This document shows positions 1,934-59,033 of a stretch of DNA of 64,000 nucleotides, in pieces. Position numbers and translations under genes: made by a program. The notes under the pieces were generated by a model, which was not told the origin of the DNA, searched no databases, and worked only from the letters and a program-made list of their open reading frames with translations. This DNA comes from Salisapilia sapeloensis CBS 127946 (lineage: Eukaryota > Protista > Oomycota). The stretch covers positions 1-64,000 of the forward strand of contig JAADVB010000069.1 in the NCBI GenBank assembly GCA_023334545.1, in the 5' to 3' direction. Within the stretch, counting starts at the first letter, position 1, and each line of letters starts with the position of its first letter.

Positions 1934-2175
1934 TTCAAGGTCATAGAAACAGATAAATGGCATGTATCAATCTATACGATCCAACTCGGTAGATTGGATA
2001 GCGGTACTTTTGAAAAAAAAACTCGACTACCTTTACCCTGTCGATATGATGAGCTAATCGCGGTTGGAAATGCGACAACAAGCTATCGTCATCGGGTAGG
2101 ACAGCTGTATCTTCTAGAGTATTCTTCATGTCCCTACATATATGCAACGATCGTCGTCGAGGACCAAGCTATCGG

Positions 2176-2190
2176 TCATTTTCGAATCTG
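2176..2190 (+). promoter_or_regulatory. Inr/FPR-like core promoter of transaldolase
   Basis: TCATTTTCGAATCTG about 60 nt upstream of ATG 2239; partial match to the oomycete TCAYTY-n-WTTY element. Confidence 0.35.
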
Positions 2191-2238
2191 CGGCCTCGCG
2201 CTCAAGACATACAAAACACCACCTTCCGACTCGATTTC

Positions 2239-3237
2239 ATGAGTGAAGAAACTCCAGCAAAAAAAATGAAGGAAACCACGCAACTTGACCAATTGAAGGA
2301 GATGACCCAGGTCGTCGCGGACACTGGTGACTTCTCCTCCATCGCCAAGTACAAGCCGCAGGACGCCACCACGAACCCGTCCTTGCTCTTTAAGGCTGCT
2401 CAGATGGAGCAGTACGCCAGCCTCGTGGACGACGCCGTCCAGTTCGGCAAGTCTCTTGACGCCAACATGGACGAAAAGGAGCGTCTCGGACTTGTCATCG
2501 ACCGCATGTCCGTCAACTTTGGTCTCGAGATCCTTAAGATCGTGCCTGGATACGTCTCCACTGAAGTGGATGCGCGTCTCAGCTTTGACACTGAAGCCAC
2601 GGTCAAGCGTGCCCACCGCATCATTGAGATGTACGAGAAGGCCGGCGTCTCCAAGGACCGCATTCTCATCAAGATCGCTAGCACCTGGGAAGGTATCCAG
2701 GCCTGCCGTCAACTCGAAAAGGAAGGCATTACGTGTAACATGACGTTGCTCTTCGGTTTCGCCCAGGCTGTCGGCTGTGCCGAAGCCGACGCGACGCTTA
2801 TCTCGCCCTTCGTTGGTCGTATCTTGGACTGGCACAAGGCCAAGACGGGCAAGTCGAGCTACGAATCGTCGGAAGACCCGGGTGTCCTCTCCGTTACTAA
2901 GATCTACAACTACTACAAGAAGTTCGGCTACAAGACGATCGTCATGGGTGCCAGCTTCCGTAACTCTGGTGAAATCCTCGAATTGGCCGGCTGTGACCGT
3001 CTAACGATCTCCCCTGCCTTGTTGGACGAGCTAACCAAGTCGAACGAGGAAGTTTCGCGCAAGTTGGACGCTTCGAACGCCAAGTTCGACGGCGACAAGG
3101 TGTCTCTCGATGAACCTGCGTTCCGGTTGATGATGAACGAAGACGCGATGGCAACGGAGAAGCTTGCGGAAGGTATCCGTGGCTTCAGTGCCGACATCGT
3201 GAAGCTCGAGGAGATCATCAAGGGCAAGCTCAACTAG
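2239..3237 (+). CDS. TAL1: Transaldolase (intronless)
   Basis: [43 protein letters not shown] (Schiff-base Lys), [23 protein letters not shown]. Confidence 0.97.
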
Positions 3238-3366
3238 ATTTCCTTCGTACATGACGAGGACATTTCAAGTGAACAAGGAGAAAATATTTTCTAAGACTCT
3301 TTTCTTTTTGTGTCTCTCTTTTTTCAACACTCGAACAACCAAATACCAGCACGACTAGCATTGACG

Positions 3367-5154
3367 ATGGAGACGGCGCGACGGAACTTTTCCATGAGCA
3401 GATGGATCAATGGGGCAGTGGCTCGGAGAGAGACTAGCTGGAAGGTGTCGAGCACACATACGCTAGAACTTCAGAGCTACTACGTAGCATCCGAGTCGGA
3501 GTCGGAGGCGGACTCGGACTTCGACGACCAACAGCTCCAAGATCTAGAGACCGAGTGGGCTCCCATTGAAGACGCATCGACCACCATTCGATCGGAGGAC
3601 TGCAATGTATGCTACATCTGCAGTGCCCCGAACCCCGACTACATGTCGACGGACGCCGTACCGCGAGCACCGCCAGTTCCCGTCTGCTCCGTCGCGTGTG
3701 AATCGGCCTACTTGGGACGCAAAGGCTATCATCCAGTGAAACCAAGTGCTTCTGGCTCGAAGAACAAGCCGAGCTGTTGTATGTGCAGTAAACCGGGTGC
3801 CAAGTACACTGCGATGGATGACGAGGGGAACAAATTAAAAGGCATATTCGTCTGTGGAGACGACTGCGAGGAAGAGTATTTAAATAAAGAAGTACGAAAG
3901 ACAAATGGGCAATCAAGAATGCAGGGCGGAAAGCTTCGTAAGCAACTGAGTGCTGTTGAAATGCACTTGATAACTGGAGGCAAGAGGAGATGGTGGACGG
4001 GAGCCTTAGCTTTCTATGAATTCGTCTATCAACGCCAGAGCATGTGGCAGTGCTACGCCATGGGCGACAACGACCCCAAAGTCGATCCGGCGCTTATCAA
4101 GTACTGGTTCGGAAACGTCTATCGTGAATTGGACCGTTCGACTGCGTATTTGCGTAAAACCTTTGTAAAGTACAAGGAGCGCTACGGCCGTTCGATGAGC
4201 TTAAAAGAAGCTCTTTGGACAGCCGTCGTCTTCCGTTTCTGCAATAAGATCGAAACTTTTGAAAAGGTGGCGATCCCATCTTCAGACAAGTTCCACTTGT
4301 TCCAGAAACGCCTGCAGCACATTGCTGAGAAACCGTCGTCAAATGACCTCTTCTCCGACGCGAGCGAAAGAGAACTCACAGTCACGTCATACCTCGAAGT
4401 CTTGCAGCGATTCCACTTTAATCTTGCGCACTACGCGGCGAAATTGGCCGAGGCCGAAGATACGTCTGAAGCATTCTCGTTGCTCCAGCAGCTCCCGTCT
4501 GCTGATGCTGCGGGTGGTACGGTGTCGAGTGGTCTCGGCTCCTTTACCTGTTGGCAAGTCGTTTGTGACCTCGTGGAGCTACACGTTTTGGATATCGAGA
4601 CGGAGAACTTTGTGTATTTAACGAAAGAAGCTCGCACGAGTCTCATTCGAATCTTTGGTCCCAAGCGTGCTTTCCCACAGGAGTTCGTGAAGCTCGCGCA
4701 CGTCTTGCAGAAACGACAGGAGCAAGGCTTTGCGCACTTGCACGTGGAGTTCCCAAAGTTACTTGGCGCTTCACTCAATCTAAAGAACATTGCTCATGCG
4801 CTCCACTTGTTCCACCACTTTTACGAGATTAAAAAAGTGGAGCGTAAGCGTCAGCAGAGTGCCAAGTTCGCTGCGAAAGATAAGAAAGGAATGGACGATA
4901 CGCGTCCAGCCTACGTCTCTCGATCTTTCATGCAAGATGATGAAGGGTGCGAAGTGTGTACGAGCGCAGAGCAAGAAGACAAGATGGTGTTATGTGACTT
5001 GTGCTACCGAGGATTCCACTTTTGGTGTGCCAACTTGTCTGGCTTGCCGCCAGCCAGTTGGATTTGTAGCACGTGCCTCAAGATGGAGACGGAGGAAAAG
5101 GAGGAAATGGAAGACGTCGACATGGAAGGGGACGACGTGATCGTGGTCGAATAA
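3367..5154 (+). CDS. Chromatin protein: two Cys4 (MYM/TRASH-like) fingers + aGPT-Pplase1/5-hmdU-kinase-helical-type domain + C-terminal PHD finger
   Basis: Intronless ORF. CYIC...CSVAC and CCMC...CGDDC fingers. Core motifs FYEFVYQRQSMW, DPALIKYWFGNVYRELDRST, VVFRFCNKIETF and GLGSFTCWQVVCDL. PHD CEVC...CDLC...HFWC...CSTC (C4HC3). Confidence 0.75.
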   Translation: METARRNFSMSRWINGAVARRETSWKVSSTHTLELQSYYVASESESEADSDFDDQQLQDLETEWAPIEDASTTIRSEDCNVCYICSAPNPDYMSTDAVPRAPPVPVCSVACESAYLGRKGYHPVKPSASGSKNKPSCCMCSKPGAKYTAMDDEGNKLKGIFVCGDDCEEEYLNKEVRKTNGQSRMQGGKLRKQLSAVEMHLITGGKRRWWTGALAFYEFVYQRQSMWQCYAMGDNDPKVDPALIKYWFGNVYRELDRSTAYLRKTFVKYKERYGRSMSLKEALWTAVVFRFCNKIETFEKVAIPSSDKFHLFQKRLQHIAEKPSSNDLFSDASERELTVTSYLEVLQRFHFNLAHYAAKLAEAEDTSEAFSLLQQLPSADAAGGTVSSGLGSFTCWQVVCDLVELHVLDIETENFVYLTKEARTSLIRIFGPKRAFPQEFVKLAHVLQKRQEQGFAHLHVEFPKLLGASLNLKNIAHALHLFHHFYEIKKVERKRQQSAKFAAKDKKGMDDTRPAYVSRSFMQDDEGCEVCTSAEQEDKMVLCDLCYRGFHFWCANLSGLPPASWICSTCLKMETEEKEEMEDVDMEGDDVIVVE

Positions 5155-5198
5155 ACAATTGCGTTTTGATTAATTGAAATGTATTGTTGCTTGACATG

Positions 5199-8100
5199 CT
5201 AAAGAGAGACGTTGATTTCGGCTTGGAGGAACGAATCGCCTGGTACACGAGCGAGGATGTTGCTGAAAGGATCTGCTGGTGGAGCGTACATCTCAAACGT
5301 AACAGCGGAAGTCGTAATTTTACTCAAATCCAAACGGAAGAACGTCCAGCAACCAACATCCACCTTTTCCGTCACTGGATTCTTATGGCGTAGCTCCATC
5401 ACAGCCATGCATCCTACATCACATCATTAGCTCTTTTACTAGTGAAGAATCAACGAGCATTGTTACCATCACGAAGGTGTTCAAGAGGGAATTGGAGGTG
5501 CCACGTATTGCCAAACCACCAAAAGTTACCACCAGACTGGATCAAAGAGTTTGGTGTCTCTTGTGGAGAGTCGACCGTCTTGCCCTGTACATCCATGATG
5601 TACATGCGGAAGAAGGGTGTCTGCATAAGCGGACCTGTCGCCATCGCCACTGCACCAAAGAATACAGATACATATGTGCTTGCCTGGACACGATCCACAG
5701 GGTGGGAAAGCAATGCCAATCGATCCTTGTCCGTCGCCTTAGTAGCCGTCGGATCAAGAATCTCCGCCATCTCTTCCTTATCCTCTTCATCCGCCACATC
5801 AACTGGCATCTGTCCTTTTAAATTCAACAAGGTAGAGTCTGCACCACGCTTCATCAGCGTCTCCACGAGATCGAATCGACTCAATTCCACCGCAAAATGG
5901 AGTGCCGTATCTCCATTCATATCCGCAGCATTCACATCTGCTCCGTTTTCAATGAGCCAAACACATACCTTTGCAGCCTCGAGACCTTCATCCTCATCAT
6001 TTTGCACCACAAGATGCAGACCGGTGAAACCTGCGCGGTTCTTTAAGTTTACGTACTCGTTCCGTAGTGCCATGTCGACGCAGATCATGCCTTGGAAAGG
6101 TGGCGCAGACGTCGCGATACGCACACCGCGCGCCCGACGGATCGCACTCATCCATTCATGCACTTCCCACTCGCTCGCTGCAACCATACTCAGCACGCCA
6201 TCTCGATTCTTGGCGCTCTTGAGTCTCGGCGACTGCACTTCAAAGCACAGCTCTTGATGCGACAGACGTCGAAGCGTAGCGTCACACAACTCGACCATGG
6301 CTTGAGGAATGATGTCGTCCTCACTCTTGAAGAGAGCGAGACACGCCTCGTCAGCCGTGACGTATCGCTTCACAGCCCACTTGGACCCGGCAGCGACCTT
6401 CAAATAACCTTTCTTGAAGATCTCCAACTCCATCGTCGATGGCAGGACAGACGGTATCGTTCCGAGGGAAACGCGCTTCGTTTGCGCCGGAGTCTTTGTC
6501 ACGAGACTTCGACGCGTCTTCTTCTTCGTAGCACGACTAGTTTGCTTGTCAAAGGTGGAGGTCGCAGTTGCCATGGATTCACCACGAAGACGAGACACCA
6601 TCTTCTGAGACGACGACGCTGTGCTGATACTTGAGGACGATCGGAGATTGTGCATCTCATCTGTGTTGTTACTACTGTTGCTGACGCTTCGACCTCGTGT
6701 GTACGCCGAGAACTCACTAGTGCTGTCGTCAAGCGAAGGGAGACTCATGCCACTAGCGCTTTGCGCGTGACTGTTCTCGTTCGCTACTTTCGCCAATAGA
6801 CGCAGCATGTCCAAGTGAGCGAGGCGACTAGCGTAGTGGAGAGGCGTGCTTCCGGCAGCGTCTTTGCCATACACGAGATCCTCCATGCCTGGATGCTCTT
6901 CCAGCACAAAGCGAGCGAGGTTTAAGTCGCCATTCTTGGCGGCAACGTGTGCTAGACTCATCATATCGTGCTGACGATCACGCACTCGTAAGAGTCCAGG
7001 CACTTCCTGTGTCAAGCGCAGGACGGTCGTGAGGTCGAACGAGTCAGCAGCTTCAAAGAGCTGCTTAGATTTATTCCGAAGACGTATGCGCGAGAGGAAG
7101 ACACGCATGACACCCACGACACTCGCAACAGCTCGACGTCGCTTCGCCGTCTCCTTGAGTCCCTGCCGTTTACGGAACAAGCTCTGGACGGTCAAGACGT
7201 GCTTTACGCTCTTCTTGTACCGCTTACGCTGCTGATGCATGCGGACAGTGGCTTGCATACGAAGAATACCTCGACGACTACGTGCGTAGTGCTTTCGAGC
7301 AAAGTGGTTACGAACAGTTGTCTGAAGGATCCGGACAGAACTCTGCATCTCAAGGTACTTGGCATGAGAAGATGCCATACGGACGGTAGCTTGGAGTCTC
7401 AAGACACCAGTCTTTGCTTTCTTGTACCTCGTTGCGTCTCGATGGCATCTCCATAACGACTGGAGCAGCGTCACATTTCGATCTCTCTTGGTGAATCGAC
7501 GACGGTGGATCTGCATACGCCAAAGAGATTGGACTAGGACAATATCCTTCTTTTCTTTCAAGTACCGACATCGATAGACGACCATCTTCCCAAACGCAGC
7601 GATACGTGTCGCCATCTTACGTTCCTTAAGATACTTTCTTCGAAGCAATGATCGACGGACCATGGCTTGAGAAGCAATCGTTGCTTCTCGTCCTTTCAAG
7701 TACTCTGTCCGGACCCAATTCGCTCGAATACGAGCTTGTACCAGCGTAATGTGTCGAATCGACTTGTCTTTAAGTCTTCTCGCTAGGAAACCACGTACGA
7801 TGCGACTAATTTGTATTTGCGCCTTGATCTGTTCGACAGCACGCATACGCGCCTTCTTTCCGTACTTTTGTCGGGCGTTGAAGCCTCGTCCCATGGCATG
7901 CAAGAGGATGGCAGCACTCTTCATACGGATGTATCGACGCTGGAGAAAGTGTGCCTTGTAGTGCGCCTGGATGAGACAAGCTGCGGCGCGTTGTTTGAGG
8001 AAAAGCTGACGCTGGCGACGCATGCCTTGGGCATTTGCAATGACCGACGCAGCGCGCTTCTTCTTCAAGAATGCTTTACGAGCGAGGTAGCATCGGACTT

Positions 8101-10783
8101 GCGCGTTGATCTTGGTCGCTGCTTTCGGTGCTTCTCGAAGGTACTTAACATGTCGACGAGCAACATTGCCACGAACATGCGATTGGATCACGATCGCAGC
8201 GTTTCGATAGCGAAGGTACTGCTTCCGTTGCAGATACATGCGTACAAGAGCTTGGAGCCGGATGATTTGCTTCTTCATGGCGACAAACTTAGCTCGAGCA
8301 AAGTGCATGCGGACACAAGCTTGGATACGTATCGCCTGACGACGCATCATTAAAAACTTCTTCCGCTGCTGTCGCCCTCGTACACACTTTTGAATCTGCG
8401 TCGCAGCTTTTCCAGTGATCTTCCGTACTTCATTATCCAATCCGCGCAACGTACTGTCGCGTAAAAAGACTTTACGATGTCCGAGCTGCCAACTATCTCG
8501 ACTCAAGTGCGTCTCTAAGATGACTTGACAAAAGTCTTTATCCTCCATCTGCGATCGTTTATCTGCACTGATCTTGGCGTTCCGAGTGAGGATCTCGTAC
8601 TTTTCATGGAACTCCTCAAACGTCCGACGGACAGGATAACCTGATCTACGAATGCGCACGGTTTCCATGACACCGAGGTAGATCAATTGATTCAAAATTA
8701 ACTCGGCGTTCCAGCCTTGCGGAAAACGCAGGTTGTTCGGTTTGACGCATCGGACAAACCACGGAGAAGTTGCTCGTAGCTCTTGCATCAAGTTCTGCAT
8801 TTGGTCTCGGAATTTACGACCGACAGTGCTCGTACCAGTCATCTTATTACCTCCAGCTTTACGAATCGGCTGTCTTGGATTACTCTTTGCTTCTCCTCCA
8901 GGTGCCGAGTACAGTTTCTTCAGGAACGTGCATTGGGTGCTGTCCATCAAGGACACTAGGTCATTATGTAGCGAATCGTCGTTTTTCTCCAAGAAACCTG
9001 TCACCGCATACGTGACTTCACCGGCGTAATGCAAAATAGTAAACTGGTCGTTGGCGAAGCGAGGTTTCACGTAGTACGCCTGTGGTGTCCCTGGCTCTGC
9101 TTTGCCAGGAGGAGCATGCGTCTGATGAAGCTTCTTAATAAAGTTCTCGTCACTTGCTCGACGGCCAAGCATCGCTTGTTCATCCAAGAGTGGGAGGATA
9201 CCCAGTGGTTTCTTATCAATCAACTCCAAACAAGGTCCATTGTCTTGAAACTGAAGACGAGAAAAGTCGATGCCTTCTTCCACATAAATCTCCTGTTCAT
9301 GCACAAAAACGTGCTGGTTGAATTGCTGCTGAAGCATTTCGTTCGTGTAGTTGATACAAAGCTGCTCGAAAGAGTTCGTTTGGAGAGACTCAAAGCCAAA
9401 GATGTCCAAGATACCGATAAACTTGTCAGCAGCTCCAGTGGAGGAAGATGACCCGACATTTTTCGTACTCTTGTTGATCTGACTAACGAGCCAGTCGAAG
9501 AGCTTGCTGAAGATGTCTTTCGCAAGACCATTACGGGACTTCATGGACTCTTCTGCCGACAATGCGATTTCGGCAACAGAGCCTCTCGCACCAGCAGACA
9601 TCGTACGCTTCGTCAGTGCGAACTCCAGCTCCGACTGTGTCACTTGAAGCAACGACGCGAGGTTGGTCACGTCTTCCGGTTGAGTTAATTGAGACTCGAG
9701 CTTGTCATTCTCTGCGAACTCGAGGTTGCCTAGATGGAGGACACAAGCAACGAGCGTGAAGATGGTTTTACGAAGTTCATCTGAAATGCCAATGGTCGTC
9801 ATGGCCGTCACGAGTTCCTTGAAATCTTTCTTGTCATTAATCTCCGGTACTTGGATGCAGTCTCCTTGGTTCAAATAGTAATAGTCCTTGGCTTTCGCCA
9901 GCTTCAATTCAGCCTTCTCTTCCTTACTCAAACCAGAACAGAGTTGATAGAAGACGTGGTAGTTGCGTTCGTTTTCACCACATCCTACGATACGACTCTT
10001 TTCCAGCAAGAAATGACTTGTCGTGGCACCTGAGATGGTTCCTTCCCGGTCGTAGTAGATTTTAATAAATTTACCAAATCGACTACTATTGTCATTTCGA
10101 ATCGTCTTGGCATTTCCGAAAGATTCGAGCACCGGATTACTCTGCAAGACGCATTGCTCGACGGAAGATCCGCTCGGAGAGTCTTCGTCACTGTCGTCAC
10201 TCGCATCTTCCTCCGGTTCCGCTGGAGTTTCATTCTCCGGGGATTTCTTCCATATCTCACTGATATTCGCCAAGTAGCGCATAATGTATTTGGAAGCTTC
10301 CGTCTTTCCGGCACCAGATTCGCCGGACACGAGTACAGACTGACACTTGCCATCCTTTTGCATCGCAGTATAAGCACCATGTGCAGTGGAATAGACGTGT
10401 GGCTTATTCTCTTCTAACTTGCCAAAGTTATCCAGCTCAGGAAAGTTATACAGCATCGGAATGTTCTTGTACGGATTAATGGAAATCAAGATGTCTCCCG
10501 TGTACGTGTAGATCTTGTCTTCCAAGTACCTACGACGAAGCAAATCGAGTAAAGGGGCTTGGTGCAAGTTGTCCATTTCCGAGATATTGTCCAAGTCCAT
10601 CTCGTGCGTTGGATCGAAAGGGTGCACTTCTTCCACCGTAAACTGCTGCTCCCCGTCCGACTCGGGCGTCACGACATGAAGCTTCTCACCGTCATCTTCG
10701 ACGACAGTTCCCAATTGCCATACGTGCTTCGTATCAGGACACCAGACCTTCTCGCCTTCTCGTCGAGGTACGCGAGTAGCCAT
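5199..10783 (-). CDS. Unconventional myosin: motor + ~19 IQ-like repeats + ankyrin repeats + PH + ankyrin + C2(Aida)-like tail
   Basis: GESGAGKTE P-loop, NAKTIRNDNSSRFGKF, GILDIFGFE, FVRCVKPN. IQ array ~7080-8410. Ankyrin motifs GSTPLHYA and GDTALHFA. PH KKGYLKV...EVHEWMSAI. One short intron near 5410-5465, then last exon MAVMELRHKNP...FLQAEINVSL. Confidence 0.93.
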
Positions 10784-10960
10784 GCTTCACGAAGGAGATA
10801 CAGGAATGAGGATGGAGGCTGTCCGAGAGGCTCGAATGATACGAAGCTAGGTGTGCGATGGGTTCACTCTTGTACCCAATCACACGAGTGAAAGACAATT
10901 TTGACAGTATCCGATTGGTAGAAATTGTACTGGACAACAAAAATCGGACACGAATTAACA

Positions 10961-12334
10961 ATGAGCTCCAAGGGTATCTCGGACCGACTTGTTGGACCTT
11001 TTTCATGGGAAGATGATGAGCGTGCAACGGATTTAAAGTACAGGATGCTATTGGCAAAAACAGAGAATGTATACACGTCGAATTTGGTTGCAAAAGTCAA
11101 TGTACCGAGCCGGTATGTAGCTCCATTGGTCCGCAAGGCATTTGCATCTCATCCAGCGTTCTATGAAACTATCGGTCGGAAAGACAAGACCACCAAATAT
11201 AACCTAGTGGTACGTATATGATCTAATGATGCTTTTATTCAAGTCAATGTATCTCTAAACTTTATCAAATAGTGGGATGAGTACGAGAATCTCGACTGGC
11301 AGGCAGTGCTCAATGGTTCTGTCATAGCCAACTCCTACTGTGTACGTAAAGGTCTTTCTCGAAAGGCTCAGCTAGCGCTATACCTCAGCAAGCACATGCA
11401 GAAGAAACCTGCTTCCATCTTGACCAAGTCGTTTCCTAAGACGCTTATAATCGACACGTGGGAAGCATACGATTCTTCTCTCGCAGCGCTAGGCATCCCG
11501 TTCCGGCAGAGACTAGACTCATGCTTGTGGGAAGCCAAGGAGAAAATCGAAACTGATCCGACTCAAATGTGGATTCTCAAGCCTAGCGCTACAAACAAGG
11601 GCGCCGAAGTATGCGTGTTGAATACATTCAAGGAGCTTCGATCATTTATCCATGAATGGACGGACATTCGAGAATGGGTTCTTCAAGCATACATCTCCAA
11701 GCCACTACTACTGCAAAATAAGCGCAAGTTCCATCTGCGTGTTTACGTACTTGCTGTTGGCTGTCTTAAAGTATACATCAGCACCAACGTGCTCATGCTG
11801 AGCGCGTTGGAAGCCTATGATACGGAAAATTATGCCAACAAGTTTGCTCACGTATCCAACACTTTCCAACAGCAAAGCCATCCGGACTTTGTAGAGGAAG
11901 AGTGCGTACTTCTACTCGATGACCTCAATGAGACGCTACGTGAGTGTGGCCACGACCCTTCCACCGCCAAGGCGAAGATCTTGGACGACATTGGCCTCAT
12001 CGTTCATGACTCGTTCGAGGCACTCAAGGGAGAGTTCTCGGTCTTCCAGCCTCTTCCAAACTGCTTTGAGGTGTATGGAGTGGATTTTATGATCGACGAA
12101 GACATCAACACGTGGCTTCTGGAGTTCAATCCAGGCCCGGACTTTAAGCAGACTGGTGGGAGACTCCAGGGCGTGATCGAGTGCTTGATGAAAGACACGC
12201 TGAGTATCGTCACCGATCACTTCTTCCGACAGGATGGGCAGCAAGTAGAGAGCGCAGGTGCTTATCGTAAAGTGTACGACGAGCAGTGGGGTGCTCAAGC
12301 GAAAGAAGGCGCTTCAATGAAGTTGCTAGATTAA
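10961..12334 (+). CDS. Tubulin-tyrosine ligase (ATP-grasp) family protein, Pby1-like
   Basis: WDEYENLDW, ANSYCVRKGLSRKAQL, WILKPSATNKG, RKFHLRVYVL, FEVYGVDFMID, WLLEFNPGPDF. One intron at about 11214-11272. Confidence 0.88.
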
Positions 12335-12371: not shown

Positions 12372-15300
12372 TTAAAAGAACTGAGCAGCTTTTTCATCTG
12401 CTTCTCGAAGATACGAAGTCGTTGCGGACGATAGGAACGAGACTCCTTTAACGGCAGATGAAAGTAGACTGGACCCAGCTCCAGAGATGAGTGATCCACG
12501 CTCATCAGCTCTTCCGTCTCGATCACTTTCTTCAAATAGTGAAAAGTCATTGCCGGAGGAACCTTGTGCAAAGTAGTTGCTCGTCACGTCGTTCGAAGAG
12601 GAACGTCGTTTCTTGAGCTGTCGCTGTCTTTGTGGCACTGGAAGCAATGAAAACCGAGGAACAGGCTCTGCAATTGTTACTCCCGTCACGTCATTCCGCG
12701 ATGAAATTACAATCGGCTCTCCTTCTACACTAGCAGTCAGTAGGCGTGTATAAAAGCATAAGGAGGTAGGTACCTATCTCGCTAATGTCGTTCGCTTCAG
12801 ACAAGGATGAAAAGAGCAATCGACTGCGTCGGAACTGAGTCACGACGTTCTTTACGACTTGTGGACCATAAATCTCCCAGTCGACTGGATCGACAAAGTC
12901 TCCAACGCGGTCAAAAAGTCTTTTGAGGCTTTTTAAACTATCACTTACATCATCCTCATCAATTTCGTCGCCCCAGCCGAACCGGACAAAGTCAGAGTAT
13001 CCTAATGTCGCTCGAACAAAGTACAAGTCAAAGAGGAACTGGAGACCACATCTCTCTCCAAAGTTGAGACCAAGAGATCTCACTTGAGCCTCCTTGGCGG
13101 ACTCTAATCGATCCACAGCAGCGTGGTACGTCTCTGCACTTTGGAGAGTCATTTGTTCCAACAGTGTTTCTCGTACTAGTCGCTCCATAAAGACGAGCTG
13201 CGTGTCATCTACAGACGATCGCCGTAGTTGGTAGTATGCTTCATCCAGAGCAAAGCAACAGAAGAAGAGGAAGGACGAGACGTTTGGCGTCTCTCGATAT
13301 GGCAGCCATACTTTTTCTTCTTGAGATGGTCCATCCGATGCTGTACCCTCATCCAAGTCCGACAGTTCATTCTCTTCATCTTGTGCATCGTCTAGTGAAG
13401 CAATAGTGAATTCATCCCATCCTTCATGCAAGTTCACCCATTCCTACGTGACAAGAAGTAGTTATGAGTTTTTCATAAGAGTGATAGAAGTATAGTGCCT
13501 ACCTCATTGGATAACGAGTACTCTTCGAGCTGAAGCAGTGCATGCAACGGCTGAATTTTCGAATGTACAAGTTCTTTGGACCATTCCTGACAATACGCTT
13601 TTGCTAGCGATTCAAATGTATGGATGAACACATCTGGATAGACATGCTTGTCCACAATTTGCGTTACGAAGAAGAAGGAGTGAAAGCCAAAGGACTGTTT
13701 CTCTCGAATCTCTTCTTCCAAGAAAGCTGGTAGACTGCTTTCTCCATTCGCCTGCATCCCTTCCATTGCCTTTCGTAGCTCTTTTCTTTGCAATCTTCCA
13801 TTAACACTCTTTTCAATCGACTCAAAATGACGTTCAGAATGGTCCAAACCGCTCTTTTTTCCTCCTTCTGCTGCCGCTGGAAACAGTAACTTCCTTCGCT
13901 CTGACGTAAGTCCACTAGCAACTGCTCCAATGGCATTCGTAGCTCTCAAGTACGTCATCCTACTTCCGTTTGCGCTCGATAGAAGTTTCTCTTCGAGAAA
14001 GATAACAAGCCGAAACACTGCTCGCATCAACTCTTCCGTCATCACACTCTGCACTTCACTTGATTGAAGAGCTTCAGCACTTTGATAGATAGATGTGAAC
14101 GTATCGTAGAATCCCGTGCGAGTAAAATCTTTCCGGACAGTCGAGTGGAACAAAAGCTCTTCAAACTCTGTCTCGAGTGTCGATACAGCGTCACTGAACG
14201 TACTGCGCACGAGCGTTCGAGCTCGCTGCCGAAAACACTGTGCAAGTAGAATGGAAAAGAAAGGGGAAGAAGCTTTGCGGTAGGGAGACGACGGTGGTGT
14301 CAGCTGGAGGAAGAGTTGTCTAGATGGAGATGAAGCGGGCGGCTCTTGAACTTCCAGCTTAGTTTGACAGGATGCAAGTGTTGCGATGGAATCGATACGA
14401 GTCAGTATCACCTGCGCCTTATCTTCGATCTAGTATTCGTGTTAAGCAAAGGCATAAAAGGGGTTGGAGAAGGGCATACCATAGACTGTTGACTTGTAAG
14501 CCATTCCTTCATGGCATCAACCAGTTGATGATTTGTAAGTCTTTCATAGGAAGCTTCTTTCATGTCGGAATATAAAAGAGCTTGGTGTCCATCCTTTGTC
14601 TTATAAAAGATCTCCACGACGTCGTAGAAAGTAGAGATGACGGACCGAACGAGTAAGTTTAACGCAGACAAAACACTTGGCTTTTTGCCTGTAGTACTAT
14701 CTTCCTTTCGTCCAAACCATTTTGCACGGGACTGAAGAAAGAGGTCTAATAAGGATTGCGTCGAAAGATAAGTCGTCGGCTCCAGATGAGCCACAGCTAC
14801 TAGACATCCACTGTAAAAAGCACTCGGCTGTCCTCGTACTTCCAAATACGCTTTCGATCGTGTCACTAGGGTCTATCATTTAACGTTAATACAAGTGTAG
14901 CTACTTTCAACTACGAGCATACCTCTTTCAAGCGTTGTAATGAAGACCACTCGGTCTCTAGGAAAGGCGAAGTATCTCCATGATGCACCTTGGCATACAC
15001 TGCTTGAGCTTGTTGGAACGTCGTCATAGCTTTAAGCATTTCTCCTCTTTCTATGAAATCCCATATCTCTTCACTAGCATTGACAAGGAGCTGGATACTG
15101 CTGTGCCTGTCATTATGCTGCAAATCGTTGTTTGAAGGACTTGCTGTTGGCGTCGGAACAGAGATCGGAGTGGTTAAAGCTGAGTGAAGTGTAGATTGCA
15201 CTTGTTCCCATCGAGATGGCATTTCTTGTAAGGACTGCTGCAGCTTCATAGCAGAAGAGTGCATGGATACGATTTGGTCCGCAGACTCGATCAGATCACG

Positions 15301-17357: not shown

Positions 17358-18977
17358 TTAACTCTCATCCTTTTCATCCCTCCTTCCATCTGCACCGTGT
17401 CCAAAATTCTTGCCAAAGAACATTTCCTTGTCAAAGTCACTCCCGATGAATTGTGCTTTATCCACTTTGCGTGCCTTGTCGATCAATTCTTGTGCTTCTA
17501 ATCGATGCGCCTTTTGCTTGGCACTACTCTCGTCTCCACCACATCCATACACTTCCATACTGTTGATCGTAAAGCGTTTCTTTTTCGACAAGGGACCAGA
17601 GACAAAGGTAAAGCCTTTGGAAGAGGCATAGCAGTCTTCATCCAGGTCTTCACCAAGAAATAAACGAAAGTTATCAATGGTACCACCCATACCGAGACCA
17701 TTCGGCAGCTTGACACCTTTTGTGTGAATGTACATACTACCGGAGCTAGCGGATGCAATGGGGTAGATGGAAAGTGACTGGTGTAGTTGGAAGAGGAAGC
17801 AGCCACTGCCGCCGAAGAAAGTGGTTGAGGTCTTCCACTCTTCATCACAAAACATTCCAAAGACAGCTATACAGAACAATTTAGCTTTAAAGGGACTAGG
17901 AGGTTATGGAAGCTTACCTCCATCGGTGTCTTGGATAATGAAGAGGGTGGGACCAGAGTAACCGAGGATGTGGTAGCAAAGGCGATTGAAAGAGAGTCCG
18001 TCTTTGGATGTTGTATAGATGCGATCGATAGGACGCTGCAATGCTGTTGTCACACTTGATAATGCTAGCAACTGGGGTCTACATATACTAATTAGCACCA
18101 GAAGTGAAAAGGTGGTTGGGTGGTAAATGTACCTCGTTAGCACTTCTGAAGACGCGTCAGATTCAGGACAAGTATACTTTGGATTGCTTTGCTCCAAACA
18201 TTTACTTGTAACGCACTGTGCAACAACAGAGTAGAAGAGTGGGAACTGTCGATCACAGTACTTGACAAAAGCGTCTTCTTGGATCTCATTTTCGTTCCCG
18301 TTGATGCTGTTTAACTGAGCAGACTGGATCGCAGCGTGACTCATTTGGTGGGCAACTTGCTCCCACTCTTTGGACTGTGAGTCGATAGGAGCACTTTGGT
18401 TGGCAGCAAGAAGCCAGAAGAAGAATAGAGACGGGAGGGTAGATGAAGATAGTACGTCCTTATCACCGGAGAATAGGTGGAAGAAAGCTCTTGTCACGGC
18501 TTGAGACGACGCTCGGGTGAGTTGAGACACTCCTTTAACAAAGTCGTCTCTATCCATACTTTTGCTATTGTTGTCAGGGTCTTCCAATAACTTTTGTCGT
18601 TGGCAGTGCTGGAAGAAATTATTGCCCATCGACTGAATCGATTGTGCTATGTCAGAAGGCGTATCTGACGGCAAGGGTAGCTCAAGCCATTTCTGCAACT
18701 ATTCGTTAGTACCTACAATGCAATCTTCTCATGGATGTAAGGTTTTGAACCTGTAACTGCGCTTGGATGGCGTCTACCTTTGGAACCGAGCAGATTTGAT
18801 CGTATTTGGCAGCAATTTCATCATATTCCTACTCATAAAATAAAGGATAGTGCGTCAACTCACGCTCATACAATTTGCAGTTCATAGGTTACAATCTCAA
18901 CGTACATGATCGCTAAACGGTCCCTTCCAAGCCTTGCTCTTGGCCGGAGAAGCTCCATGACTCGCCATATTCCCCAT
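17358..18977 (-). CDS. TLDc-domain protein (TLDC1/MEAK7-like) with N-myristoylation-type start
   Basis: Exon 1 MGNMASHGASPAKSK. TLDc motifs IYTTSKDGLSFNRL, YSGPTLFIIQDTDG, FFGGSGCFLFQL, NGLGMGG and MEVYGCGG. Confidence 0.82.
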
Positions 18978-44493: not shown

Positions 44494-46892
44494 CGTTTAT
44501 TAGTGCTCGGAGTACGTTGTATACTTTTCGTCTAAAGCAATGCTTGCTATATTTGCCAATTGGGCGTGCATTGTTTAGACTGCTTCTAATTTTATCTTTG
44601 GTCATCTAGATATAAATACATCGTACCATGGACACGTTAATAGATTAAAGATAAGCTCAATGGAAAACAAAGGAAATTCAGATACAGCAGAGGATGACGG
44701 GGAAGAAACCCAAGTCGACATACTGGATGAGGAAGGCGAGCAGACAAGCACGAACATTGATTATATCATGAGGCGAAAAGAGAACGAATGGATGGATCGA
44801 CTTCGACTGCTGAAAGAAGAATCTGAGAGCCTTATGACACAGGAACGAAAACGATATGAGGAGTTGGAAGCTAAACATCAGGAGCTAAAACGAAAGCATG
44901 CTGACGAAGTAGCTGAAATGGAAGCTCATCATGTGAAAACAGTACAGGAAGTCGAAAACCAGTATGAGCAAAAGCTTGCCTACGAGCTTACTAGATATGA
45001 CACACTATCAGAGACATTGGAGAATACAAGACAGAAATGTGCAGCTTTAATTGAAAGTCAGGATACGCATTATCGGAGTCGGCTCCACAATGAGCGTAGA
45101 ATGAATGAAGCTCGTTCCAATGAACAAAGTGAAATCCTTAAGCGTCTTCATGACGACATGAAATACAACCATATTAAGTTTGAGGAAGTGCTTGAACAAG
45201 AGGAAAGTGAGTATGAAATGCAACTTCTTAAGCTGCGCGAAGATTACGAAAAACAGTTAGAGATGGAGCGTCAGAATACAGCATTGAAACAAGGTCAGCT
45301 CAGTGCTACAACTACTAAACTGGAGTCCATGAAAAAGAAGGTTCAAGAACTTAAAGCATTTGCACAGACACAAGATGCTTTGCTCGTAAATGAGACTGCA
45401 AAAGTCGAAAAGTTAGAGCAAGCAATCGTTCAGTATGAAAAGCAGAGTGAAGTGTACAAGGAAACGATTGGAAACAGAGACAAAGAAATACATGAACTAA
45501 AGTCCTCGAATCGCATTTTGGAGAAGTTTCGATCGGTCTTGGAACACCGAATTGAGAATCTAGAGATGGAGAAAGCCCCAATGCAAGAACATGTTACAAG
45601 TCTGGAAACAAACATTAAGGAGATGCAAAATGAACTTGCTCAAGGGCTGCGCCAAAAGCAGTTGTCAGATAAAGAAATTGATGTAAAAGAAACCCGATTG
45701 AAACTTATCACGAATGAAGTGCGTGTACTGCGCCAGAAGTTTACTCAAAAGGATTATGCCATGAGTGAAATGGTGCGGACCATAGGACAGATTTCGCAGA
45801 TGACGAATTTAAAAGACATGGAAGTAGCAGTGAAGCATGCATTCAATGGATTCGTAGCAGAATTAAACAAACAAAAGCAAAAGTCGGCTCCACAAAGTAG
45901 CGCACCAGGAACACCAGGAACACCAGGAACTCCATCAGCAAAGACGCAGAAAGCTATGTCTCCGATGGACCCCAAGCTGTCCAAAATACTGAAAAAAGAT
46001 GATACTGTACAGGACCCTTCGACAAGTCTTGATGTTGTTCTTGGCTTTGACTCTAAGCAAGCCGTCGAAGAATCGGAAAAACAAGTTGAATATCAGAACA
46101 AGACATTAAAAACCCTTCGGTCAGCTTTGGGAAATACACAAGCCAAAGCAGTTCGTGTTCGGCGTGAAGCCATATCGGAAGGAAGTGTGCTCATTGAAGA
46201 ATGCAATCACCTGCGAAAAGAAAACAAGGAGCTCCGCATGCAGTTGCGAGAAAAAGATGGTGCTGGTCATGGAAGCAATAATCGAAGGGGAAAAACTAGC
46301 GTCAATACAGAAAGCAAAGGATCAATGACACCGTCCAAGAATCTGCTTGGAAGTGCTTCTTGCCCATCCATTGAATCCATGTCACCACAGGGATCTATCC
46401 TGTGCAACAGTCCAGTGGTAACAAGTCCATTAAAGCTAAAACCACTACGGTCGCAATCGCCTGGAAATAACAGACGACTAGATCAGTTATCTAGTCCAGC
46501 AGCACTAAGAGGACATTTCGAACGACATCGGCACCAGGCACCACTTGAACGCATGGATGACATGAAAAACATTATTAGCGATCAAGAGAGAGAAATCATG
46601 CGATTGAAAAGACAAATTCAAATTTTGCTTGAAGAGGACAAAGGTACATTTATTATGTCGTCTTTATATTTTTTATGTTAATGAGATCTTGTGCGTAGAT
46701 GACACTAATCTTGAACTATCATCTTTACAGTCGCATTCGGAAACACAAAATGTGAAGTGGGCGAACACCATACCTTTAGTCAGTCCGCTTGGTTCCCTTC
46801 GGCCGCTCACATCACCAACCGGGCAATCGCTGGACTCTTCGTTTGTACTAGCAACGTCCCAGAGCCCAACACCCGATGCTTCACTTGCGTGA
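44473..46892 (+). CDS. CFAP57/WDR65-like coiled-coil protein lacking most WD40 repeats
   Basis: IDYIMRRKENEWMDRL, YEQKLAYELTRYDTL, EEVLEQEESEYEMQLLKLREDYEKQL and SNRILEKFRSVLEHRIENL resemble the CFAP57 C-terminal coiled coil. Putative 5' exon 44473-44511 plus intron 44512-44578 adds a WD-like remnant (alternative start ATG 44660). A 3' intron lies near 46642-46698. Confidence 0.62.
45903..45929 (+). repeat. 9-bp coding tandem repeat (CACCAGGAA)x3 = PGT repeats
   Basis: caccaggaa caccaggaa caccaggaa within the disordered region APGTPGTPGTP. Confidence 0.8.
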
Positions 46893-57683: not shown

Positions 57684-59033
57684 ATGAAAACTTCCTACGC
57701 CTTCTACCTCACCATTGGGGCGGTCGCGCTCCTGACTGGCGCCACCGTCGCAGACGTCAAGGAACCACCCAAGTATTACTGCGAGTCGGACGCAGACTGT
57801 AAGAAGAACTTCCCAGGTACCGTCTGCATCACGGTCGACAGCTATGGCATCAAGTACAGCAAATGCACGCCCAACACCAAGGAGCGTCCTGCGTGCCGAG
57901 GCGCGCAGCCTGGTATGTGCCCGTCATACCAGAGCCCGGAGAGTGATTATCTGAACGCCCACTGCGTCTTCGTCGCCAAGGACGATGTTGATGTCGACGA
58001 TGAGGATGAAAGCCCCGCTACTTCTGGGGAAGAAAGCGAAGCGGATGAAAGCACGAGTGGATCGGAAGAGGAAGCTTCGGAAGAGAGCTCGAGCGACCGT
58101 CGTCGCTTGGCCAGTGGTTCGGAAGATACCTCTACTAGCGATAAAGCAGCGTCCGACTCTACCTCTACCAAGTCATCTACTAGCTCTAAATCTACAGCAA
58201 AGTCTGCTGCTGCCGAGGAATCTGCTGCCTCGGAAGTTGATGAGAAGTCTGCTGCGTCTGAATCCTCTACCGCAACCGATGAATCGGCCACTGAGGACGA
58301 ATCTGCTGAAGCTGAGCCGATTGATACAGATAAGTACACGACCGTGACGATCAACAAGAAGAAGGTGAGTGGCGAATTTATGTGTGTCGACGTCTCGGAT
58401 TGCGAGAACAAGGCGTACGATCCGTCCTCTTGTGAATCGAAAAATTGCGGATCTCCTGGTAGTAAAGAGATTTGCACCCACCAGGGTACATGCACATATG
58501 CGACGAAGCAAAAGATGAGCCAACGAAGCTGCATGTGCTACAAGGGCTACGATGGACTCAAGTGTGAACGCGAAGTTTCGGGCGAATGTGATGTTGACTG
58601 TGGCTACGGTGGTGACTGTGTCGACGGCGAGTGTGTGTGCAAGGCAGGATACGATGGCAAGAAGGTTGATGGCAAGCAGGGAAAGCCAAACCGCCGTTGC
58701 TCTCGCTGCACGAACGATCTCGCTTGCCAGAACGACAACAAGTGTGAACTTGAGACTGGCACGTGCAGCTGCAGCCCTGGCTTTAAGGGCCCGACGTGCG
58801 GTGCTACGGAAGACTCTTGCACGACCAAGGACTGTGGCGAGAAGGGTAGCTGTCAGGTCTTTGGCAACGGTACGTCTGCCTGCTGGTGCACTTTCATGAA
58901 CCCGGACAAGGTCCTGTGCGACGGTACGGACTGCAGCGACTGTGAGGTGGACGGCGCAAACGTCTACTTCCCGAGTGGACTGGTGCTTGGCGTTACTAGT
59001 GTTGTCATTGCGTTGGCACAAGTCGTTTTCTAA
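57684..59033 (+). CDS. Secreted/surface EGF-like repeat protein with Ser/Glu/Ala-rich spacer and C-terminal hydrophobic anchor
   Basis: Signal peptide MKTSYAFYLTIGAVALLTGATVA, Cys-rich N-domain, low-complexity SEA region, EGF-like CMCYKGYDGLKC / CVCKAGYDG / CSCSPGFKGPTC, terminal GLVLGVTSVVIALAQVVF. Confidence 0.8.
   Translation: MKTSYAFYLTIGAVALLTGATVADVKEPPKYYCESDADCKKNFPGTVCITVDSYGIKYSKCTPNTKERPACRGAQPGMCPSYQSPESDYLNAHCVFVAKDDVDVDDEDESPATSGEESEADESTSGSEEEASEESSSDRRRLASGSEDTSTSDKAASDSTSTKSSTSSKSTAKSAAAEESAASEVDEKSAASESSTATDESATEDESAEAEPIDTDKYTTVTINKKKVSGEFMCVDVSDCENKAYDPSSCESKNCGSPGSKEICTHQGTCTYATKQKMSQRSCMCYKGYDGLKCEREVSGECDVDCGYGGDCVDGECVCKAGYDGKKVDGKQGKPNRRCSRCTNDLACQNDNKCELETGTCSCSPGFKGPTCGATEDSCTTKDCGEKGSCQVFGNGTSACWCTFMNPDKVLCDGTDCSDCEVDGANVYFPSGLVLGVTSVVIALAQVVF

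Follow-up and report, generated by a model that had tools for sequence, protein, structure and literature searches.

The window analyzed here is a stretch of 64,000 nucleotides (nt) from the oomycete Salisapilia sapeloensis CBS 127946 (assembly GCA_023334545.1, contig JAADVB010000069.1, positions 1 to 64,000 of the forward strand), and the gene in question lies near its left end. It encodes a domain of the PF18723 family, which is associated with thymine hypermodification in phages, together with zinc-binding modules that include a PHD finger. The open reading frame (ORF) spans 3310-5154 on the forward strand; its first ATG, at 3367, opens an intronless coding sequence for 595 amino acids (aa), and these coordinates were re-translated (Table 1).

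Transcription of the gene was evident from RNA data. A 1843-nt RNA-derived contig from run X3 corresponded exactly to 3340-5182, with 0 differences, no splice and a depth of 40, and it was distinct, also in depth, from the contigs of the flanking transaldolase and myosin genes in the same run. The gene is expressed as its own unspliced transcript. In two RNA runs the three neighboring genes join in one contig, and a fragment of the gene with ~95% identity was present in an RNA run of a related organism. The RNA runs represent cDNA, because all four of them show removal of a 53-nt GT..AG intron (5413-5465, reverse strand) located close to the 3' end of the myosin gene.

Table 1. Features of the PF18723-PHD gene and its product (residue numbers refer to the protein)
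Feature	Position	Strand	Basis or remarks
Unspliced mRNA, 5' untranslated region ~27 nt, 3' untranslated region ~28 nt	3340..5182	+	RNA-derived contig, 1843 nt
Coding sequence, 595 aa, interval including stop	3367..5154	+	ORF translation; N-terminus aligns with the orthologues' start
N-terminal motif FSMSRWIN (consensus F-x-L-S-x-W-F-N)	3388..3411	+	F8, W13, N15 near-invariant in oomycete orthologues
Zn finger 1, C-x2-C-x21-C-x3-C, ending VCSxxCExxYL	3610..3714	+	C82/C85/C107/C111; V, C, C, E, L invariant
Zn finger 2, C-x2-C-x22-C-x3-C, paralogue of finger 1	3775..3882	+	C137/C140/C163/C167
PF18723 core (HMUDK_hel, formerly aGPT-Pplase clade 1), predicted all-alpha, HhH-glycosylase-like	4012..4803	+	Pfam, AlphaFold2, VIA-align
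Kept motif NVYRELDRST	4114..4143	+	N250, R253, D256 near-invariant family-wide; family Gly258 is Ser
Kept motif FRFCNKIETF	4231..4260	+	R290, N293 near-invariant
Kept motif GSFTCWQVVCDLVE	4537..4578	+	Aligns with clade-2 GFGPWIGFKIADMMD (base-flipping/DNA-contact residues); F393 opposite wedge Trp, D401 invariant
Degenerate turn LTKEARTSL (family L-G-P-G-A-x-x-G-L)	4618..4644	+	All three Gly and the Pro replaced
Degenerate helix IAHALHLFHHF (family I-E-H-x-L-C-E-F-x-K-Y)	4789..4821	+	E476 to A, C480 to H, E481 to L, K484 to H
PHD finger, C4HC3, residues 528-570	4948..5076	+	PF00628, E 8.5e-7, 29.4 bits against a cut-off of 24
C-terminal VIVVE following an acidic run	5137..5151	+	[VI][VI]x[VI][DE] end in 22/23 oomycete orthologues

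Residues 216-479 matched PF18723, named "5-hmdU DNA kinase, helical domain" in Pfam (5-hmdU, 5-hydroxymethyldeoxyuridine), with a score of 87.8 bits (the cut-off being 25) and E 1.1e-24, well outside what chance would give, over hidden Markov model (HMM) positions 7-265 of 281. This bears out the first-pass annotation, which had named the family from motifs in the sequence; the motifs it quoted (FYEFVYQR, VDPALIKYWFGNVYRELDRST, FRFCNKIETF and GSFTCWQVVCDLVE) are all present, as are the two Cys4 fingers ahead of the core and the PHD finger behind it. PHROGs returned a family of unknown function only. In the Pfam scan of the protein, PF18724 (the family of the clade-2 transferases discussed below) gave no match at E up to 1 and no glycosylase HMM matched. 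The protein is not one of the PF18724 transferases.

A single-sequence AlphaFold model was rejected (predicted local distance difference test score, pLDDT, of 35), and we used instead an AlphaFold2 model built from a 148-sequence alignment (mean pLDDT 79.6, core mostly >95). When this model was compared with 48,161 PDB chains by VIA-align, the top match was 8z2m, the 5-phosphomethyldeoxyuridine (5-PmdU) glycinyltransferase PaMx11 gp46 (Z 10.1 over 235 residues), level with the queuosine-nucleoside hydrolase/queuine-salvage enzyme QNG1 (Z 10.1). Glycosylases of the helix-hairpin-helix (HhH) type followed at Z 6-9, namely Mag1 (Z 8.8), AGOG, EndoIII/NTHL1, AlkA, OGG1, MutY and ROS1. Foldseek gave weak matches of the core to the PDB (probability 0.75 for 8z2m). 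The model thus points to an HhH-glycosylase-like fold, as had been proposed at first pass, that appears closest to the thymine-hypermodification transferases. The HhH-GPD hallmark h-P-G-h-G and its catalytic Asp were not found: the sole G-P-G turn of the family reads T-K-E in the window protein. By eye, this lost L-G-P-G-A turn looks more like an HhH hairpin than does GLGSFTCWQ, and the earlier designation of the latter as the HhH now appears doubtful.

Loss of the family signature in oomycetes

A word-indexed search identified proteins of the same architecture, with ~40% identity, in Phytophthora, Peronospora, Bremia, Plasmopara, Pythium, Globisporangium, Lagenidium and Albugo, with a single hit per species listed. 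In P. infestans and Pythium oligandrum, as in the window, the gene lies directly downstream of a transaldolase gene. The order of the transaldolase, PHD, TTL and myosin genes, with an AMP-binding gene nearby, is common to window positions 2128-12334 and these two species; Myb and VPS51 genes that intervene in both are missing from the window, and the window myosin gene is inverted. The gene is an old syntenic orthologue across oomycetes. A transposable-element origin, which one database name implied, was ruled out because gene order is conserved and each listed species gave one hit. The oomycetes formed one clade (SH-aLRT 100) in the core-domain tree, and the window protein was the earliest branch of that clade. 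The stem of this clade measured 1.02 substitutions per site and was followed by short internal branches.

Column statistics were computed on the 148-sequence alignment, with the oomycetes set against multi-domain and standalone members of the family. The oomycetes retain F216, F219, R223, W227 and the motifs NxYRELDR, RxxNxxETF and GxFxxWQxxCDLxE. Three otherwise highly conserved columns are changed in them (E222 to Q, R/K230 to Y, and G258 to S), and the F-T-x-A-H-Q motif is absent or not alignable. The family turn L-G-P-G-A-x-x-G, whose Gly, Pro, Gly and Gly are conserved at 97, 88, 96 and 88%, reads L-S-L-D-A-x-x-S in oomycetes (S/T, L/K, D/E and S at these four positions) and L-T-K-E-A-x-x-S in the window protein. 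The family helix I-E-H-x-L-C-E-F-x-K-Y has become I-G-H-A-L-H-G-F-x-V-Y in oomycetes, and the window protein carries A476, H477, H480 and L481 there. For both the L-G-P-G-A and the E-H-x-L-C-E motif the flanking residues align unambiguously.

We drew 16 signature positions from E222, R/K230, G258, F-T-x-A-H-Q, L-G-P-G-A-x-x-G and E-H-x-L-C-E-x-x-K. The majority of non-oomycete members read ERGTAHQGPGGEHCEK at these positions and score 13-16 out of 16. In contrast, all oomycete sequences (24/24) score 0-2, with the typical pattern QYS-GDRSLDSGHH[GS]V; the window protein scores 1. The signature Cys is present in 98 of the 105 non-oomycete members that cover its column, while His is found in 23/23 oomycete sequences covering it. 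The column that corresponds to the metal-binding Glu of clade 2 holds Ala or Gly in every oomycete orthologue covering it (A476 in the window protein, Gly in most). The replacement residues are themselves 96-100% conserved among oomycetes. The protein is therefore a PF18723 member by HMM and fold that departs from the residue signature of its family.

The Cys/Glu signature is also missing, independently, from at least one other eukaryote-like PF18723 lineage with a long stem of 1.06 (P0119 and P0144, and partly P0075 and P0122). Because of this independent loss, the shift of the fold to a non-canonical form may be recurrent.

An exhaustive HMMER search with the core collected 333 cluster representatives at E ≤1e-3. 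The nearest non-oomycete relatives were multi-domain proteins, and 72 of the 73 scanned carry PF18723. Their partner domains were PTM/DIR17-type Tudor (19), PHD (8 by Pfam, more by pattern), chromo (3), MBD (2), HSF (1) and WRC (1); no P-loop kinase was found in these 73. Since the nearest relatives fuse the core to Tudor, PHD, chromo, MBD or HSF domains, a chromatin context appears to be general for it. At least one multi-domain relative is eukaryotic, as its contig carries mitochondrial-carrier, LYR and RAP genes. The relatives P0026-P0149 comprise a large unstudied set with the signature intact, fused to Tudor, PHD, chromo, MBD or HSF domains; one such fusion, 1751 aa long, is encoded on a compact contig of eukaryotic character (locus L009, 6001-11256). 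AlphaFold DB holds further UniProt entries of this reader-fused kind. When a mixed alignment was used for a word-indexed search, nothing but the oomycete set and one fragment came back.

The standalone PF18723 proteins of ~300 aa were a separate set in the core tree. No match was obtained by tblastn with the window core against phage genomes; starting from a closer intermediate, P0034, tblastn reached M6, SP10 and other phages, with M6 gp55 and the SP10 protein being of the standalone type. In M6, gp55 (PF18723) adjoins gp54 (5-hmdU DNA kinase, PF18748) and lies three genes from gp51 (PF18724, a glycine:DNA transferase). In SP10 the kinase and the PF18723 domain are fused (PMC5889632).

Modules around the core and the gene neighborhood

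Three features were specific to the oomycete clade: the N-terminal F-x-L-S-x-W-F-N motif, one or two Cys4 fingers ending in VCSxxCExxYL, and a [VI][VI]x[VI][DE] tail after an acidic run. Finger 2 is absent from the Pythium and Albugo orthologues. Both fingers were modeled with moderate confidence (pLDDT 71-90 over finger 1). Their spacing, together with VCSVAC and VCGDDC, fits the TRASH/FCS/MYM pattern (C-x2-C-x19-22-C-x3-C, [FV]-C-S-x2-C), a likeness in spacing only. Residues 1-204 had no Pfam match at E ≤5, and a profile of 16 fingers matched no zinc finger in the PDB. No family assignment was obtained, as neither a Pfam model nor a solved structure recognizes these fingers.

The PHD finger has the full set of ligands (C528, C531, C543, C546, H551, C554, C567 and C570). 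In sequence and structure it is closest to fingers that are mostly readers of the unmodified H3 tail, namely those of DPF2/3, MOZ PHD2, BAZ2A, ATXR5, KDM5B PHD1, UHRF1 and ORC1b, with 33-38% identity and a root-mean-square deviation of 1.1-1.7 A. The H3K4me3 readers BPTF and TAF3 also match, but less well. Gly549 occupies the position at which readers of the trimethylated tail carry a cage Trp. The C-terminal VIVVE resembles a SUMO-interaction motif (SIM) and may act as one. Two PHD-fused relatives outside the oomycetes, P0040 (DDDIVILS) and P0052 (EEISILS), also end in an acidic, hydrophobic, SIM-like tail, and because of these similar ends the tail may predate the oomycete branch.

The transaldolase gene upstream (2128-3237) is on the same strand as the PHD gene. 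The convergent gene downstream (5450-10783, reverse strand) encodes a myosin of 1777 aa that carries IQ, Ank, PH and Aida_C2 domains; given the spliced intron at 5413-5465, this mechanically called ORF misses the true C-terminus of the myosin. The end of the myosin transcript is ~14 nt from the 3' end of the PHD-gene transcript (5196 versus 5182). Other large ORFs in the window encode TTL, COG2, an LRR-WW protein, a RING protein, neurochondrin and a carnitine acyltransferase. Four further ORFs of 263-673 aa, at 13473-14411 (reverse), 17904-18698 (reverse), 44660-46681 (forward) and 57684-59033 (forward), have no Pfam match at E ≤1e-5. Among window ORFs of at least 250 aa there was no PF18748-type kinase, no dioxygenase and no other DNA-modification gene. 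In this set the kinase association of the family is therefore missing, and the first-pass statement that no P-loop kinase or TET/JBP partner is encoded here holds for it.

From transferase homology to the possible role of the core

To read the lost residues in terms of function we relied on clade 2 (PF18724), for which an alignment was built from eight phage transferases. With hhalign, the non-oomycete clade-1 profile matched clade 2 at a probability of 87-90% (E 5e-7 to 2e-6), and M6 gp51 alone yielded the same local match as the clade-2 alignment. The clade-1 segment "LxLKxIEHaLCEf" was paired with clade-2 "vNIQEVETVLCKW" (IEHaLCEf on VETVLCKW, and thus E-H-x-L-C-E on E-T-x-x-C), and "GxFxAWQxxCDLxE" was paired with "GFGPWIGFKIADMMD". 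The oomycete profile had no significant match to clade 2, nor did the N-terminal halves of clades 1 and 2 match each other significantly; the resemblance of D240-P241 in the N-terminal half to clade-2 D-P-I-Y is one seen by eye only.

The clade-2 Cys acts as the nucleophile on C6 of 5-PmdU (C247 in M6, YuA and PaMx11; C226 in phage 15599), the Glu/Thr four residues ahead of it binds metal, the Cys and Glu are essential, and the Trp of GFGPW is the pocket floor for the flipped base (PMC8989533, PMC11472151, PMC13458397). The roles in base flipping and DNA contact of residues in the GFGPWIGFKIADMMD segment are taken from PMC11472151. By homology to clade 2, H480 of the window protein would stand at the position of the nucleophile and A476 at that of the metal ligand, while the aromatic/DNA-contact segment (F393, D401) is kept. 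The enzymes characterized to date all belong to clade 2, and clade-1 M6 gp55 was dispensable in the reconstituted in vitro reaction (PMC8989533). PF18723 is therefore a family without proven activity.

The first-pass annotation had offered the protein as a candidate writer or reader of DNA-base modification. As a writer it would be an amino-acid or polyamine:DNA transferase-like enzyme that hypermodifies 5-hydroxymethyluracil (5hmU)-derived thymine in oomycete chromatin. This is consistent with PF18723 membership and fold, and reader-fused relatives with a full signature may well be writers. However, in every covering oomycete orthologue the Cys nucleophile has given way to His and the metal-binding Glu to Ala or Gly, a loss of conserved residues that the annotation had itself named as counting against its proposal. 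The missing PF18724 match and the lack of kinase and dioxygenase genes among the window ORFs described above also argue against a writer, as does the fact that even the phage clade-1 protein is unneeded for transfer in vitro. Our literature search found no paper on the oomycete protein or on PITG_05635, and none on 5hmU or TET/JBP in oomycetes. We consider the writer half of the proposal highly improbable; the reader half is now favored.

The explanation that we prefer, with about as much confidence for it as against it, is that the core is a repurposed, non-catalytic reader or adaptor of DNA and chromatin, i.e., a pseudoenzyme. The core would descend from the base-flipping thymine-hypermodification proteins of phages and eukaryotes and would have kept their fold and part of the DNA-contact surface. 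On the oomycete stem the pocket would have been rebuilt, with the Cys nucleophile, the metal-binding Glu and the Gly-Pro-Gly turn swapped for residues that are now fixed. Because these replacements are 96-100% conserved, the pocket appears to have been repurposed rather than to be decaying, and the long stem, the short internal branches and the fixed replacements together indicate one episode of remodeling followed by purifying selection. The present-day core could then act as a non-catalytic DNA-binding or base-probing module in a protein that is probably nuclear. Docking on unmodified H3 tails would be the task of the PHD finger. Further contacts with nucleic acid or protein would come from the two Cys4 fingers, and SUMOylated partners may be recruited by the acidic, hydrophobic C-terminus.

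Several considerations weigh against the pseudoenzyme explanation. No clade-1 protein has demonstrated activity, and the label "catalytic" for the lost residues therefore rests on homology to clade 2 in the C-terminal half. DNA binding might likewise suffer from the loss of the Gly-Pro-Gly turn. Furthermore, a new active site could be assembled from D401/E404, D256 and the two or three His residues that the former catalytic helix carries.

This last point leads to a different explanation, in which the rebuilt pocket (H477, H480, H483/H484 in the window protein, and the kept D401, E404 and D256) performs some other DNA or nucleoside chemistry that the PHD finger targets to chromatin, for example hydrolytic or lyase-type removal of a modified pyrimidine. 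The invariance of the replacement residues across oomycetes would be expected of such an enzyme, and a long stem followed by strong constraint fits neofunctionalization. The superfamily, moreover, includes glycosylases and QNG1, the latter matching the model as well as the transferase does. On the other hand, no precedent or motif ties this set of residues to catalysis, and the HhH-type Gly-Pro-Gly turn of the related enzymes is gone. A remodeled enzyme is unlikely, in our judgment.

It could also be speculated that the core has left DNA altogether and serves as a helical platform within a chromatin complex held together by the PHD finger, SUMO and the Zn fingers. Loss of the Gly-Pro-Gly turn and of several pocket residues would be understandable in that case, and several protein-interaction modules are present. 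However, GxFxxWQxxCDLxE, whose clade-2 counterpart in the alignment holds DNA-contact and wedge residues, is fully kept, and so are NxYRELDR and RxxNxxETF; a purely protein-binding role is improbable on these grounds.

A bolder idea concerns the DNA itself. Oomycetes reportedly use N6-methyladenine and have little or no 5-methylcytosine, and their chromatin readers are, to our knowledge, barely studied. If oomycete DNA carried a modified pyrimidine (5hmU or a derivative), the protein could be its dedicated reader or a His-dependent eraser, coupling the mark to unmethylated H3K4 and SUMO signaling. We regard this as a rather doubtful proposition; if true, a major group of pathogens of plants and animals would possess a base-modification reader of a new class, one that arose from a dead phage-type writer.

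Comparison with known systems

Eukaryotic homologues of the family were reportedly predicted by Iyer et al. in 2013 (NAR 41:7635), and orthologues of the gene already bear PF18723 and PHD annotations in public databases; the gene does not represent a new kind of system. The new findings are that the signature has been lost throughout the lineage, that the fingers and tail are oomycete-specific, that the gene is syntenic and that there is evidence of its expression. It has an orthologue in every oomycete lineage sampled and derives from phage thymine-hypermodification machinery. Current database labels merge two groups, a broad eukaryotic set of signature-intact reader fusions, which are plausible thymine writers in algae and other protists, and the rebuilt oomycete branch. 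The oomycete branch offers a cheap test bed for how the fold of a DNA-modifying enzyme turns into a reader or a new enzyme. Judging from the residues kept, the signature-intact Tudor, PHD, chromo and MBD fusions outside the oomycetes are plausibly better candidates for eukaryotic thymine writers than the oomycete protein, and it is to them that searches for hypermodified thymine in eukaryotes should be directed.

The phage clade-1 proteins (M6 gp55 and the C-terminal half of SP10 gp186) belong to the same Pfam family, with the same all-alpha HhH-like fold and the NxYRELDR, RxxNxxETF and GxFxxWQxxCDL motifs. They differ in being ~300 aa long, in standing alone or being fused or adjacent to a 5-hmdU DNA kinase, and in having kept E-H-x-L-C-E and L-G-P-G-A. 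The window protein, in contrast, has lost the signature and gained Zn fingers, a PHD finger and a SIM-like tail.

The clade-2 transferases (M6 gp51, YuA Pplase2 [25qc], PaMx11 gp46/PUGT [8z2m], PhiW-14 gp109 and phage 15599 Pplase2) are base-flipping, HhH-containing proteins whose C-terminal halves are homologous to clade 1 by hhalign. They are metal-dependent and use a Cys thiolate, whereas the window protein has His and Ala at these positions and no PF18724 hit.

A conceptual analogy may be drawn with proteins of the Mag2 type. S. pombe Mag2 is a catalytically inactive HhH-glycosylase homologue that still binds DNA lesions, and the oomycete core may likewise exemplify a fold that engages DNA after losing its catalytic residues. 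Mag2 belongs, however, to a different family of the superfamily and has no chromatin-reader fusion.

The closest sequence relatives outside the oomycetes are the uncharacterized eukaryotic fusions of HMUDK_hel to Tudor, PHD, chromo, MBD or HSF domains, found as metagenomic and UniProt entries under names such as "PHD-type domain-containing protein" or "5-hmdU DNA kinase helical domain-containing protein". As in the oomycete protein, the core is joined in them to a chromatin reader, in some cases a C-terminal PHD finger; unlike the oomycete protein, they have the complete signature and are without the Cys4 fingers.

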